This document shows, one piece after another, positions 8,087 through 15,263 of a stretch of 64,000 nt of DNA; within the stretch, counting starts at the first letter, position 1; each line of letters opens with the position of its first letter. Both the position numbers and the translations under genes were made by a program. Under the pieces are notes generated by a model, which did not search any database, was not told where the DNA came from, and worked only from the letters and a program-made list of their open reading frames with translations. Source of the DNA: Hyphochytrium catenoides (Eukaryota > Protista > Hyphochytriomycota); assembly GCA_900088475.1 (NCBI GenBank), contig FLMG01004575.1, positions 7,683 to 71,682 of the forward strand, written 5' to 3'.

Positions 8087-9031
8087 TCACTCAACAAAAC
8101 TTCCTTGACTTTGTCTCTTCCTGCTTTGCTTCTCCAATTTCTTTTTGCTAAGCTTCCGAGTCGCCATCTTGTCATAGTAACCTGCTTGCTTGGCTTGGTT
8201 ATTGGCATAGATTACAAGCGCTCCGAGACCGCCGACGGAAAGAGCTTAGGAAACGAGGAGGGACACATCGTTAGCCGGACTTTCACAGTCACCGAATAGG
8301 GATGCAAAGGCAACATACCTAAGAAGACCCCTATGATCACGTAGGAAGTCGTAGCATCAGATTTGGCCTTCGATTTCTTCCCATTTCGTGTTTTAGCGTT
8401 CGCTGAGGCCTTCGTTTTCCTCTCCCCTGCTTCCTGAGCTTTAGTACGGAGCTCCACATATTGCCTCATACCCTCGTTGACCTCATGCTGGCATCTGGGA
8501 ATGACTTCAGTCAGCTTTTTGTGGATAAAACCCCACTTGCAGCCTGCCTATATCTTACTCTTCCTTAAGCTTGTTATTTAGTTTCCCTTCACCGGTTGCA
8601 CCCTCCGCTTGCAATTCTTCCAACGTTTTCCTGAGATCTGCCTGACAGTCTTCGCTCATTCTACTGTAAATGAAGCTGAACATGCGCGTCCTGCAGTTGA
8701 CAGGCGTAAGCTTTGTTTTTCATAGGCTCAAATGAGGAAGCTGGGCTTACTGCTCTTCCTCGTCAGGAGTCGCTGCGGTCTCCGACTGGTGGCCTGCGTC
8801 TTCGGTCGTTTCGTCAGATGCGTCAAAGTCTTCATCCTCATCCTCTAGGGAACCGGCAGAAGAGTCTTTGGCCTCTAACGTAATATCGTTATCTTTACTC
8901 TCCTCTTTTGCCAAAGCATCGATGCTATCTTTGCTATTGGCATTCGCATAAACGGCGATAACTCCTGTGGCCACAAGCAGCGCGGCTAACAGGAGACCCA
9001 ACAGATTATGTTTACGACGGCCAGACAGCAT
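8087..9031 (-). CDS. Hypothetical type I membrane protein
   Basis: Signal peptide LLGLLLAALLVATGVIAVYA, acidic low-complexity segment, Cys-containing helical region, TM starting YVIIGVFL, basic tail RKLSKKKLEKQSRKRQSQGSFVE*. Spliced. Confidence 0.65.
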
Positions 9032-9766
9032 CCTGCACCTGTACGAGGCTCCACGAGGGCGGGTTGTTGGCTTGTGCAGTCAATTAGAGGCCTCCGATAG
9101 AAAACATATAGTGACTTCATCACTGCTTCCTGAGGACGCGAGCTTGTGGTCTTCCAGGCGGCATCAGATTACACAGTAGTTCCAATCCAGCACACCTTCT
9201 AGAACTAAACTCCAGAGTCTGAAGGATTCGGAGGAGGGAGGAGGATCTCCTGCTGATCTGCAATCTGTGAGATCTGTGGATCTAATAATGTGATTACCCT
9301 TTCTTTGATCCGATATGGGATTATTCTTTGTCCTGGGGGAGGTCTCTACGTGGTTGAGAGGGCGGGAATTACGAAAGCTCAAAAAGGGAACCACATTTCC
9401 CTCGCCTTTCGTCTTCCGAAAAGCTGCAGATCATTGCGGATCAGAATGCGACGTCTCATCATCGCTCCTCTTACGGTTTACTTAGGGAGAATAACCATGG
9501 CACAGGGAGCGATCTCATATATCGCTTGGTCGTCGAGGCACAACGGGGGCCATGTGGCTATGTCTGTGTTTCGTGGCTGCTTAGGGTAGAGCTAACTGGG
9601 AACATAAGAGAGAATGGCCTTTGATAGAGTCTCCACGTGAAGAAGTTTCTCAATTTACACGCCGTCGCTATCTTGACGAGTGACTTAGAGCCTAGGCGAG
9701 CAAAGTCTTTCAGAATTATTCCTGTCGCTTGGTCAACCCTGAAGGCTTCAAGTTCCTTATCGAGCT

Positions 9767-12700
9767 ATGTTGCGCAAAAAGTCTATAATAAGCAAACTTG
9801 GCTCGCCGCCCTCGCAAAAGATAGGAAAGCCCTTCGTCTCGCCCACAGCCAAGAGGCCAGACAACCAAGATGAGAGCTTTCCTAGACATGATGAGGAGCA
9901 GTATCTTACAAACTCCCAAGCGGTGAGCTTAGCGAAAAGTCGCACTGATCTCAACCGCAGCGGGCCTTCTGACGCTGTCTGTGCATAGGTCAAGTCAGGC
10001 TCTGTTGCAGTGCAGCGGATGCCATTTCTGTCTTTTCTCTCTGTCCCAAAGGATACTTCCAGTCTCTGCAGAGCTTTCAAATCACCTGCTGGAGTTAAAA
10101 GAACACCGCAGAGCGATGAGCTCTTGAAGAGAAAGACTCTAGGAGTACGTCTCGTACACCAATGATTAGAGCTAACCCATGTAACTTTTCTTAACGCTCA
10201 ACTCGGTTTTATAGGCAAGACGGATCTGGAGTCGAAATATTCCCTCAGGTTTCCGCAAGCATGACTATGTTCAGGTAAGCGGCAGGCTATTCCAGGGCTA
10301 CTCTATCGTCGTTGACGGGCGATGGCTGACTGTATCTCTCGAAGGTTGAGGATGGCCTCGAGGAAGATGAAATAGGTGTTCCCGAGCAACCTACAATTGA
10401 AGCTCAGCCGCCAACCACAGCGCCAGCGGCTTTACCTGAGGCTCCTCCTTTGGTCTTATGGGAGCCCCCAGAAGGTGAAGAAGGCGAGCCTGTGGTTGTC
10501 GACCCTATTGTGGGAGCATACCTACGCCCTCATCAACGTGAAGGTGTACAGTTCATGTTCGAGTGCGGTGAGTTGAACCTTTGGAAAGTTATGCAAGCCC
10601 CGATGTTGTTGACTAAGATTTCACCCCTACAGTTGCTGGGCTTCGAGAATTCGAAGGCAGCGGGTGTATCTTAGCAGATGACATGGGCTTAGGCAAAACC
10701 CTCCAGGTATAGTTTGTTACTATAGGCGGTTCTTCTTAAGTTGAATACTCAGTCGTGCTGCAGAGTATCACGCTTTTGTGGACTATGCTTCACCAGGGCT
10801 GGAAGGTGAATGCCCCCGTAGATAAGGCCATTGTCGTGTGTCCCACAAGGTCTAGTGAGCATCGGAGTCTGTCCCACCTAAGCTGAGGCTGACATTACTG
10901 GCTTTCAGTCTGGTCAAGAATTGGGACGACGAGATTGACAAGTGGCTAAATAAAGACCGTAAAGGGCTGCCTTCAAGACTGAAGACTGTCGCTCTTAGTG
11001 GTAAGTCGTTCAATGAAGCGCCTCCAAAGCTCCTTCAATCAAGTGCTTCCTTGCCACAGAGGCTACGCGAGAAGAAGTTGTTCGAGGAATCCGTGATTTC
11101 AAAGCTACCAAGTTCAAAGTTGTTTTGATCATTTCATATGAGGTGAGCTGTGGAACGGAAGTTTCAACTCATCAAGCTATTGACAGCGCACTTCAGACTT
11201 TTCGCCTTCACAGCTCCAAGTTCTCAGATCCCGCCGCTTGCAGTCTGCTGATCTGTGATGAAGCACACAGGCTGAAAAATGGAAATGCTCTCACAACGCG
11301 CGCATTATCCAGTAAGCACTAGGAAGGGTTGAGAAGTCCGTGTCGTAGCCCTAAATCTTCCGTCAGATTTGCACTGCAGGAGGAGAGTCCTGCTATCTGG
11401 CACACCCATCCAGAATGACCTTGAAGAATTCTTTGCCATGGTAAAGTACAAGGCTAGCCTCGTTTAGGCGAAGCTCTGTGGTCTTCTAATCACGAGTCTT
11501 ATCCAATGGTGCAGGTTGACTTCACTAACCCCAGTATTTTCGGAGACGCGTCAGACTTTAGAAGGACTTTTATGAACCCCATTCTGGTGGGAAGGGAGCC
11601 AGATGCTTCCGAAGGAGAGAAAACATTGGCTCAGCAGTAAGTGAAAAGACGTAGAACCCAGCTCTTCTTTGCTTCACTCCTACTCTCTCTCCGTTAGGCG
11701 ATCGTCGGAGCTATCTGATATTATCAACCAGTTTATCCTCCGGCGGACCAATTCGTTGAATGCGAAGCACTTGCCCCCTAAGCTTACTCAGGTATAAGCT
11801 TTCTATTGCACCAAACTCTGATATGCAGCCCAGCTAAGGCAGATTCAGGTTGTCTGCTGCAGGATGAGTGAGGTTCAGAACCAGTTGTACACACATTTTC
11901 TCAACTCTAAGCACTGTCGAGCCATCATCAACTCTCAAGATACAAAGGTTCTGTCCTCAATAACAGCGCTAAAGAAGTTGTGCAACCATCCCCAGTTGAT
12001 ATATGATGCCAGGTAACTCCTTGCAAGCTAGTGATTGCTAGCTTATCCTCAACCTTCTTCTACAGCAAGAACTCGTCTGGTGCAAGTGCTCCAGGCTTTG
12101 AGGACTGCGACAAGTTTTTTCCTCCGGAGATGAGATCCCGAAAGGCATGCAATCCGAGTCTTTCTGGGAAGGTTTGTCTGGTTGTTGTTGCTTTGCCGCC
12201 CGGGATATAATGTTAATGCTATTCATGAACTTCAAACTCTGTTCTACTTGGGACAGCTCCAAATTCTGACTGAATTATTGAGATTCATGAAGCTGAAGAC
12301 TCAAGACAGAATTGTCATTGTCTCAAATTACACGCAGGTAGATCCTTGCTAATTCTTAGCAACGGGTTGAATTCTCATTTATCCTTAGCAACGGGTTTAA
12401 TTCTCATTTGTCAACATTTCCCGGCCTAGACGCTGGACTTGTTTGCACAGGTTTGCGAGAGTCATTCTTGGGAGTACATAAGGTTAGATGGGAGCACCAC
12501 AGCCTCAAAGAGAAAGAAGCTGGTTGATGTCTTCAACAAAGAAACACGATACTTTGCCTTTCTCCTGTCAAGCAAGGCTGGTGGTTGCGGTTTGAATCTA
12601 ATCGGCGCCAACCGGTTGGTGCTCTTTGATCCAGACTGGAATCCAGCGACAGACAAGCAGGTACGAGCCCAACAGCAAGACCCAAAGGTCACGAACAGGT

Positions 12701-14699
12701 TGCTTTATGCTAACCAGACCGCTATACCTATAATGATGGTAGGCCGCGGCGAGGGTCTGGCGTGAAGGACAGACCAAGCGATGCTACGTTTACCGCTTTG
12801 TTACTACGGGTATGGTTCTGCGCACCTTGGCCACAGTTAAGTAAAGTGTACTAACTGCAGATTGAGGGACCATTGAGGAGAAAATTTTTCAGAGGCAACT
12901 CAGCAAGGAAGGACTTCAAAACATTGTGAACGATAAAGAAGATATGAATACAATGTCATCCAAAGATCTTAAGGTAATGGCTCTCTAAAAGTTGTCACCG
13001 CTTTTATTTTTCTTCAACCTTCCCTGCAGCTCAAGATCTAAGGCTTCTGTAAAGCACTGCCCCTAGTCATCCTGAAAGTGTGCAGGTTATAGATCTGGTG
13101 CACTGGGCGTTGACCACACTGGTTGTCTGGTTCTCACAGTGCGTCCTTCAACATTTCAAAATTCTAGAATCTCTTTAAGTATCGGGACGCTGTCTTCTCG
13201 GACACTCATGATAAGATAAAATGCAAGCGATGTCCGTGGCCTCTATACCATCAGGAGGAGGTGGAGGAGATAGAGCCACCCATATCGCTGCCTAGCCCTA
13301 TCGTTGCTCTTGAGAAGTGCCGGAGGGTCCTGGACACTATCCTCGACCACAAGCTCTGCTCACTCTTTGAAACAGGTATGCCTCTCATGGCCATGTCTTC
13401 TTCCTGGAAGTCTTCGTGAGTTTCCTATCTCCTTCACCCACTACCGTGCTAATTCAATAGCGTTTGCTTACAGCTCCGCTGGACTTAGACGATATTGAGG
13501 AATATACTAGGATCATTCAGAAGCCCATGGACATTGCCACTGTACAGCAAAACCTTGTTTCTGAGACTTACAAGCGGGCAGGAGAATTTTTGCGGGATAT
13601 GCGACTAGTTTTCTCAAATGCCTTAGCATTTTATCATCCGCAACAAAGAATGCACAGAGACGCACTAAAGCTTACAAAGGTCTTTGAAAAGGCCTTCTCC
13701 AAGCTCGTGGGGAAGCCGAAGGATTATGAGAACGATTTTGAGATGGAAGAGAATGTGACACCAGCAAAAGCGGGTAGGTCTAGTCGGGGTCAAAAGTTCG
13801 CTTAGCTCCCCCAAGTGTCCGCGTACAGCTGGCCTCACAGTTCCCACTTTCATATCATTTTCTTTAGGCCTTGTTAGTTCCAATCCTGACTTCCCTTACC
13901 TCGCATCGCCAGGCTCTCCCGGCAGGGCGCAATGTAGTCCAGAGGTGCAGGACGGTAGTCCGTCTCTGGCCTCCTCTGACACGAGTGACCTCTGCTTGTC
14001 ACTCAGCGCACTTCGAATAAAGTATAAGGGCCAGTCTTCGTCCCAAATTGGGTAAGCAGGGAAATATCTTACAAATCTAAGCCCCATTTGCTTCCCGGTC
14101 TGCGTCAGAACTGATCAGCAGCGCCATGCAGGCTCCCCTCTGAGGATGACCTAAACAGCTGGGGTCATCACATATCTTATGACACTGTCGACGACGAGGT
14201 TATGCGCGCTGCATGCGAAAGTAGCGATCTGGTATGTTTTTTGGCCTCTTCTCTGCATAATCAGTCAGCTTTCTAACTGAGAGCAACAAACTTCAGGTGT
14301 CTTTTATCTTTACCTGTGAAATTGATTACGACATTATGATGAAGCACGCTGAGAAAGAGGCGAACGAACAAAAAGATAAGTCTTCGTCAACCAATTCTAG
14401 CACAGACTCCCCTATATTACCCGATGCGGAAGAGGTTCAAGAAGAGCTAAGCTCTACACGAACTGGTAAGTCTCCATTCACGGGCATCTCTTGCACTTCA
14501 GGTCAACATCAATGTGTTCTCTTCAGAGGAAGACAGCCCAGACAAAGGCAGCAAGATGATGAGTCCTGTACCTATGCGAACCGGCCTGTCCTACCTTAGT
14601 GCGGACAGCTCGCCCCAGAAGCGCAGTGCTGAGGAGGAAGAGCAAGCATTTGACGAGAAAGAGAATTACAGCGGCAATAGGCCAGTAAAGAAGGTATGA
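9767..14699 (+). CDS. RAD54: RAD54 SNF2-family DNA translocase with an inserted bromodomain (multi-exon)
   Basis: Motifs [119 protein letters not shown], and C-terminal [12 protein letters not shown]...DDLNSWGHH...VSFIF. Start and last exon approximate. Confidence 0.9.
12355..12412 (+). repeat. Tandem 29-bp duplication inside a RAD54 intron
   Basis: cttagcaacgggttgaattctcatttatc followed by cttagcaacgggtttaattctcatttgtc (2 mismatches). Confidence 0.9.
13305..13700 (+). other. Bromodomain-coding segment within RAD54 (split by one intron)
   Basis: [98 protein letters not shown] fits the bromodomain pattern Y..I..PMD..T...L....Y.....F..D..L.F.NA. Confidence 0.85.
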
Positions 14700-15263
14700 A
14701 GAATGAACTCGACAGCACCAGTGACCGACATCTCATGCGTGATGGGATCCCTACCCTGCACTTTGGACCCTCCTTTGCTCTGATGACAGACCAAGACCCT
14801 CCAGCAGGACTCAATTTGCATGAGCACTCCGAAGCTCAGCAGCAAACATGGGCGCCTCCCTGCTGGGTAGCTCTGTTCCGCTTCCTCCTCACACTTTGTC
14901 TGCTTCCTTGCAGTTGTGTACGATTTGATCTTCATCTATTTATTATAACGCTTGTATTAAAAGTATCTAGCAGATATTGTTTTTCGTACATGTTCTGCCT
15001 TCCGACTTCTCTCGTACATTAAGGTGCTTGGTACTGGCGTCTCCACCCCAACTTGGAGAGAATCGATAGCTCTTTCATAAGCCTAGAGATGCTCGTTTAG
15101 GCCTCTCCTTCAATATCACTTCGGTCCGATTGTCCCGTCCTCTCTAACCAACTCGCGGTTCAAAACCAAAGTCTGGTGGTTGACTGTGATACTGTGATGT
15201 TGAACCACCTTTCAGGTCGCCGTCCTTCTCCTCGGCGGCAAAAAGCTCACTTTTCGTGAAGAC

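Follow-up and report, generated by a model that had tools for sequence, protein, structure and literature searches.

As the central motor of homologous recombination, RAD54 must operate on chromatin, yet the canonical protein contains, to our knowledge, no histone- or acetyl-reader domain. The CxxC and W-x-H halves of its C-terminal tail lie close together and form a zinc site in a C-terminal domain that packs on lobe 2 of the motor. A locus of the hyphochytrid Hyphochytrium catenoides raises the question of whether this tail can be divided by a complete bromodomain. The locus lies in a stretch of 64,000 nucleotides (nt) of contig FLMG01004575.1 (assembly GCA_900088475.1, positions 7,683 to 71,682 of the forward strand), hereafter the window, to whose first letter all coordinates refer. 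A preliminary description of the window placed a bromodomain and a linker, read in frame, between the two halves of a RAD54 tail at 13195-14330, and regarded the motor as RAD54 and not as a SNF2/BRM-type remodeler. Our analysis provides good support for a genuine, in-frame bromodomain insertion between the CxxC and W-x-H-H tail halves in the predicted protein, and for a motor that is of the RAD54 type. The function that such an insertion may serve is a more tentative matter and is weighed below.

The evidence for the insertion begins with a single exon on the + strand (13168-13375), which runs stop-free and without a usable donor from the first half of the RAD54 tail into the bromodomain. Its first part (13168-13233) encodes the SDTHD-CxxC box (motif stretch 13198-13233, CxxC at residues 713-716), and the remainder (13234-13375) encodes a 22-residue linker rich in proline and glutamate, helix Z of the bromodomain and the first part of the ZA loop. 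A 98-nt intron within the bromodomain (13376-13473; donor cag/GTATGC, acceptor ttacAG) separates this exon from the next, and the join of 13375 to 13474 creates a GCT codon (Ala) and restores the ZA-loop motif '..F-E-T-A-P-L-D..'. The bromodomain exon (13474-13773) provides the ZA loop and helices A, B and C, followed by an acidic stretch. After an intron of 94 nt (13774-13867; donor cgg/GTAGGT, acceptor ttctttAG) comes a linker exon (13868-14051) of 61 residues, rich in serine and proline and probably disordered, which ends in ..GQSSSQIG and has correct phases on both sides. An 80-nt intron (14052-14131; donor tgg/GTAAGC, acceptor catgcAG) then leads in frame into the second half of the tail (14132-14231), with the motifs WGHH and DEVMRAA, and a further intron (14232-14296) precedes the VSFIF motif, which is encoded from 14297 onwards. 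The inserted segment thus comprises residues 717-925 (209 residues, between C716 and L926) and consists of the 22-residue linker, a bromodomain with all four helices and an acidic, serine- and proline-rich linker of approximately 83 residues.

The exon 13474-13773 alone matches the Pfam bromodomain family PF00439 with 63.8 bits (cut-off 21.7; E=1.4e-17) over profile positions 20-83 of 84, and it matches 383 solved bromodomain chains, the best single domain being the second bromodomain (BD2) of BRD4 with 42.5 bits. When the spliced segment was compared by phmmer with unrelated bromodomains, the alignments extended from segment positions of approximately 30-40 to approximately 135-155 and contained all four helices (Z, A, B and C). 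As these alignments cross the 13375/13474 splice junction and include helix Z, they validate the junction and show that the domain is complete. The nearest bromodomains are those of chytrid fungi and of MMETSP transcripts, and they give no clear indication of the origin of the domain.

The gene model that carries this insertion was built from a three-frame translation of 9900-15100, in which 20 conserved peptides were located and the GT-AG introns that keep an open frame were enumerated. RAD54-like peptides are spread across all three + frames of this region, as is typical of eukaryotic genes interrupted by numerous short introns. The resulting locus has 24 exons and 23 GT-AG introns (53-194 nt) between an ATG at 9767 and a TGA at 14697-14699, and the spliced model translates to 1071 residues, stop-free throughout. 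The order of elements in this open frame, the coordinates 13195-14330 and the 'QIG/LPSEDD' join between the linker exon and the second tail half are all as the preliminary description gave them, and its claim of a complete bromodomain likewise stands. The architecture as observed is confirmed and lies far beyond chance.

Several indirect features agree with this model. Splice sites were scored with a position-weight matrix derived from the gene's own 23 introns, and those around the insertion obtained, in order of position, 10.1, 7.5, 4.5 and 9.7 for the donors and 2.4, 6.7, 5.0 and 5.2 for the acceptors. A long-intron model (345 nt, 13774 to 14118 or 14121) that drops the linker exon was judged less likely, with acceptors of -2.9 and 0.4. 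Codon scores, expressed as log-odds trained on the other open reading frames (ORFs) of the window, were positive in frame for the junction exon (0.21), the bromodomain exon (0.24), the linker exon (0.11), the second tail half (0.39) and the last two exons (0.38); they were negative in wrong frames (-0.14 and -0.60 for the linker exon) and mostly at or below 0.1 in introns. An independent DNA run with the same organism label yielded a contig of 6104 nt that follows 9700-15000 collinearly, differing by 25 substitutions and one indel, so that an assembly chimera is excluded as the source of the arrangement. At several sites in this interval, two DNA runs differ from the window sequence, and these differences fit the H. 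catenoides genome paper, which describes a diploid genome with single-nucleotide polymorphisms and viral insertions. The runs, dated 2011 and 2017, belong to one study, in keeping with that paper's account of data added to an earlier BioProject; metagenomes from soil and from the plastisphere also gave matches. Kalium channelrhodopsins are known from the same species.

A diverged relative from a soil metagenome provides a further comparison. There, the upstream intron carries 11 substitutions in 114 nt and the part of the exon that encodes the insertion no more than 2 in 138 nt (Fisher p=0.004); the intron (12974-13167) is thus approximately 10% diverged, whereas the adjoining exon is nearly identical. 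The insertion-coding part of the exon is under constraint in this relative. Because the exon is shared with the CxxC box, the splice scores and codon usage are favorable, the DNA is sound and the sequence is conserved in the relative, we consider it very probable that the protein is made as modelled. The intron 12974-13167, at 194 nt, is the longest of the gene.

The identity of the motor was assessed from the exons encoding the SNF2-type ATPase core (10633-12973, + strand, 14 exons), which are supported by the splice model, by Pfam and by matches to solved structures. Single exons match Helicase_C (E=2.1e-13) and SNF2-rel_dom (E=5.9e-5), and ATPase motifs I-VI can be read intact from the spliced protein. 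Among all solved structures, the one closest to the helicase-C exon is zebrafish Rad54 (1z3i), with 96.5 bits as compared with 73.7 for ERCC6 and 57-59 for BRG1, SNF2 and Sth1, and the lobe-1/HD2 exon again places 1z3i first (37.8 bits, followed by 32.4 for ERCC6). The first half of the tail (LF..SDTHD..CxRC) aligns to residues 567-587 of the 644 in the 1z3i chain, LFSLNEKTLSDTHDRFRCRRC; this match is weak when taken alone (whole-sequence E=0.057 with 16.8 bits, domain 14.4 bits), and with it three separate pieces of the protein share zebrafish Rad54 as their best solved relative. A motor of the RAD54 type, as opposed to the SNF2/BRM type, is well supported by these match scores, drawn from a structure library that appears to hold no RAD54B as a competitor to 1z3i. 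By match score, the ATPase thus does not group with SNF2/BRM, in keeping with the preliminary description.

On this basis, the reading that we favor, and hold to be somewhat probable, is that the locus is one gene for a RAD54-type double-stranded DNA translocase with a bromodomain inserted in a loop of its tail; the most likely role of this domain would be that of a targeting or regulatory module. This level of confidence weighs a well-supported architecture against a function that is only predicted. The bromodomain fold is a left-handed, up-down four-helix bundle whose N and C termini lie together, opposite the ligand pocket. As the ends of the domain are adjacent and the linkers on either side are long and flexible (22 and approximately 83 residues), the CxxC and WGHH halves could still meet as they do in canonical RAD54. 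The bromodomain would then be a tethered unit whose pocket faces away from the motor, and may bind a modified lysine of histones, of RAD51 or another recombination partner, or of RAD54 itself. A precedent is available in human cells, where BRD9's bromodomain binds RAD54 at its acetylated K515 after damage and promotes formation of the RAD51-RAD54 complex (PMC7251110); in Hyphochytrium the role that BRD9 plays toward human RAD54 would sit within the same polypeptide.

Several points weigh against this reading. The exon-intron structure of the RAD54 gene was predicted from genomic DNA alone. The segment after the insertion, which we take to be the W-x-H...DEV..AA segment of RAD54, gave no RAD54 match when compared on its own by phmmer with solved structures; of the split tail proposed in the preliminary description, therefore, the first half is matched to 1z3i and the second is visible as the motifs WGHH, DEVMRAA and VSFIF in the order expected of RAD54. 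The zinc site at the CxxC and a His/Cys pair is likewise presumed here by comparison with canonical RAD54, and our literature search found no text on the RAD54 zinc site. The linker exon differs between the DNA runs by two nonsynonymous variants; others fall shortly after the bromodomain (one) and within it (one, M to V). Their number is too small for a dN/dS test, but together they suggest that the linker is only loosely constrained. Queries with the bromodomain exon or the junction exon, which could not show full-length kin, returned no orthologue of the same architecture. Finally, the acetyl-lysine pocket is atypical: FY replaces the canonical YN (13590-13660), with Tyr at the position of the acetyl-lysine-anchoring Asn and Phe at the preceding Tyr.

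The proposal of the preliminary description that the domain could target homologous recombination to modified nucleosomes is, given this pocket, one of several hypotheses. The FY segment lies over FSNCYKYNPPDH of BRD4 BD2 and over FSNALLFNGPQS of chytrid polybromo-like proteins in ungapped alignments. Tyr instead of the anchoring Asn could make binding weak or non-canonical, or direct it to something other than acetyl-lysine, and from its sequence canonical acetyl-lysine reading by this bromodomain cannot be assumed. These substitutions give weight to the explanation that comes closest to rivaling a targeting or regulatory module, namely that the bromodomain is degenerate and acts as a structural or docking module (a spacer, a surface for dimerization or for a partner, or an autoinhibitory plug on lobe 2). 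The best solved single-domain match, at only 42.5 bits, and the fast-evolving flanking linker point in the same direction. However, the rest of the fold signature is retained (the P-M-D motif, helix Z and the F-S-N motif), and the change from Asn to Tyr is not unique to this gene, since the first bromodomain of human PBRM1 also places Tyr at the anchoring-Asn position (..NAKSYYKPDS.., ungapped). The similarity to that PBRM1 domain amounts to only ~28 bits and its protein context is different. We regard the degenerate module, as specified here, as rather doubtful.

By analogy, the bromodomain may tentatively be considered a targeting or regulatory module that is a genuine reader of acylated or otherwise marked lysine, a possibility that falls short of an even chance, and a structural or docking role that involves no reading of acyl-lysine is about equally likely. 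A more elaborate version, in which the protein would be a self-contained reader-motor whose translocation is gated or targeted by acyl-lysine on histones (of the donor or broken chromatid), on RAD51 or on lobe 2, appears unlikely. In that version the zinc-knuckle loop would tolerate the insertion and would link the binding of a ligand to where the C-terminal domain sits on ATPase lobe 2.

A second alternative concerns the identity of the gene, which could be a RAD54B/Rdh54-like protein or a lineage-specific paralogue with another chromatin task, with canonical RAD54 encoded elsewhere in the genome. The apparent gap in the structure library noted above would hide such a relationship, the N-terminal pieces match no Pfam family, the acidic tail added at the C terminus is unusual, and the spacer in this loop between the tail halves is longer in RAD54B. 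In contrast, the form of the CxxC motif and the SDTHD box resemble RAD54 proper, as does, we presume, the N-terminal stretch ..AFKSP..KRKTLG.RR... A paralogue of this kind is an improbable explanation of the locus.

It is more improbable still that the bromodomain exons lie outside the main RAD54 mRNA (skipped, confined to a minor isoform or lost by early transcript end) and that the fusion is an artefact of the model: a skip from 13236 to 14132 would formally keep the frame, and with the 345-nt alternative intron the linker exon would be lost, but helix Z shares the CxxC exon, so that a bromodomain-free product requires the sole in-frame skipping donor (tcc/GTGGCC at 13236, which scores -7.0 as compared with 2.9-10.5 for nearly all real donors), the remaining GT sites in exon 13168-13375 cause a frameshift if used as donors, the bromodomain stays in frame even with the long intron, and the insertion exons show coding codon usage and are conserved in the relative. 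Two other origins of the arrangement were ruled out. A nested, independent bromodomain gene is contradicted by the exon in which the domain starts, which contains no in-frame Met and has its ORF in common with the CxxC box, and a recent transposon-borne insertion by the flanking sequence, in which no direct or inverted repeats were found beyond one 14-nt chance pair.

The novelty of the arrangement was evaluated in the literature and in sequence collections. Searches on Rad54 and bromodomain (fusion, oomycete, Snf2 family, domain architecture) returned the BRD9 work and reviews and no RAD54-bromodomain fusion, and the H. catenoides genome paper makes no mention of RAD54 or bromodomains. A RAD54-bromodomain fusion is therefore undescribed in the literature searched, as the preliminary description had supposed, and may sit unremarked in annotated proteomes. 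In a representative database, the best 150 matches to the bromodomain exon included only multi-bromodomain (polybromo-like) proteins and no Rad54-like ATPase; no single-domain match among them exceeded 92 bits, and the protein itself or a close orthologue was not visible. A word-index search with the bromodomain exon and with the junction exon, whose length filter leaves out full-length kin, gave no match. A look-alike search of the Atlas with the junction exon returned only noise, consisting of Helitron-like fragments. The sole metagenome locus obtained with the bromodomain exon (L001:3065-3178), with a 42% match over 40 residues and E=1e-4 among candidates, was rejected as spurious, as it has no other similarity to the gene.

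With RAD54/RAD54L (1z3i) the protein shares the ATPase lobes with all motifs and the SDTHD-CxxC box, and the putative tail motifs W-x-H-H and VSFIF follow in the order expected of RAD54; it differs in the 209 residues, bromodomain included, between CxxC and W-x-H-H and in an acidic, serine-rich extension of approximately 100 residues. The SWI2/SNF2-BRM, BRG1 and Sth1 remodelers have the same list of Pfam domains (SNF2-related, Helicase_C and Bromodomain), but their bromodomain is a C-terminal appendage, whereas here it is an internal insertion in a loop of the RAD54 tail, and no HSA or SnAC region was seen in the Hyphochytrium protein. Because the Pfam list is the same as that of Brahma-type proteins, this architecture could hide in domain-based surveys, for example in the 'Brahma-like' entry for oomycetes (PMC4030286). 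That table of oomycete chromatin regulators contains a Brahma-like Snf2-bromodomain protein and a CHD protein with an inserted bromodomain-PHD (Phytophthora infestans PITG_03401: Chromo, Bromodomain, PHD, Chromo, SNF2...), and no RAD54-bromodomain protein (PMC4030286). The human BRD9-RAD54 axis also has a bromodomain working with RAD54 in homologous recombination, and the functional link drawn here is by analogy with it. BRD9, however, is a protein in its own right whose pocket is canonical, whereas in Hyphochytrium the putative reader is within the RAD54 chain and has Tyr for the anchoring Asn (PMC7251110).

A natural RAD54 with a built-in bromodomain would provide a test case for reader modules that steer recombination motors, and a RAD54 loop that tolerates large insertions would be useful for engineering. 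The finding concerns one gene in one species and an atypical pocket, and other chromatin-domain chimeras occur in this genome and in oomycete relatives, so that the degree of surprise is moderate.

The remaining parts of the gene lie at its two ends. The tentative 5' part (9767-10567, + strand) consists of exons 9767-9976, 10052-10144, 10215-10274 and 10345-10567, with GT-AG joins and an open frame. The three N-terminal exons of the model, including the start codon and first intron, are provisional, since the first donor is weak (score -0.1) and a Pfam scan of the N-terminal pieces matched no family; the other exons are anchored by homology. At the 3' end, the last two exons (14297-14465 and 14527-14699) are separated by an intron (14466-14526) with a strong donor (ctg/GTAAGT, 10.1). 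They encode VSFIFTCEI... and then, at 14360-14699, the acidic, serine-rich extension beyond the RAD54 tail, and a Pfam scan of these two exons and of the linker exon matched no family. We know of no such acidic C-terminal extension in canonical RAD54. Upstream, a 94-residue ORF on the - strand (8747-9031) is arranged head-to-head with the RAD54 gene, with approximately 735 nt between the two start codons, and has a signal-peptide-like start (..LLGLLLAALLVATGVIAV..) and an acidic tail.

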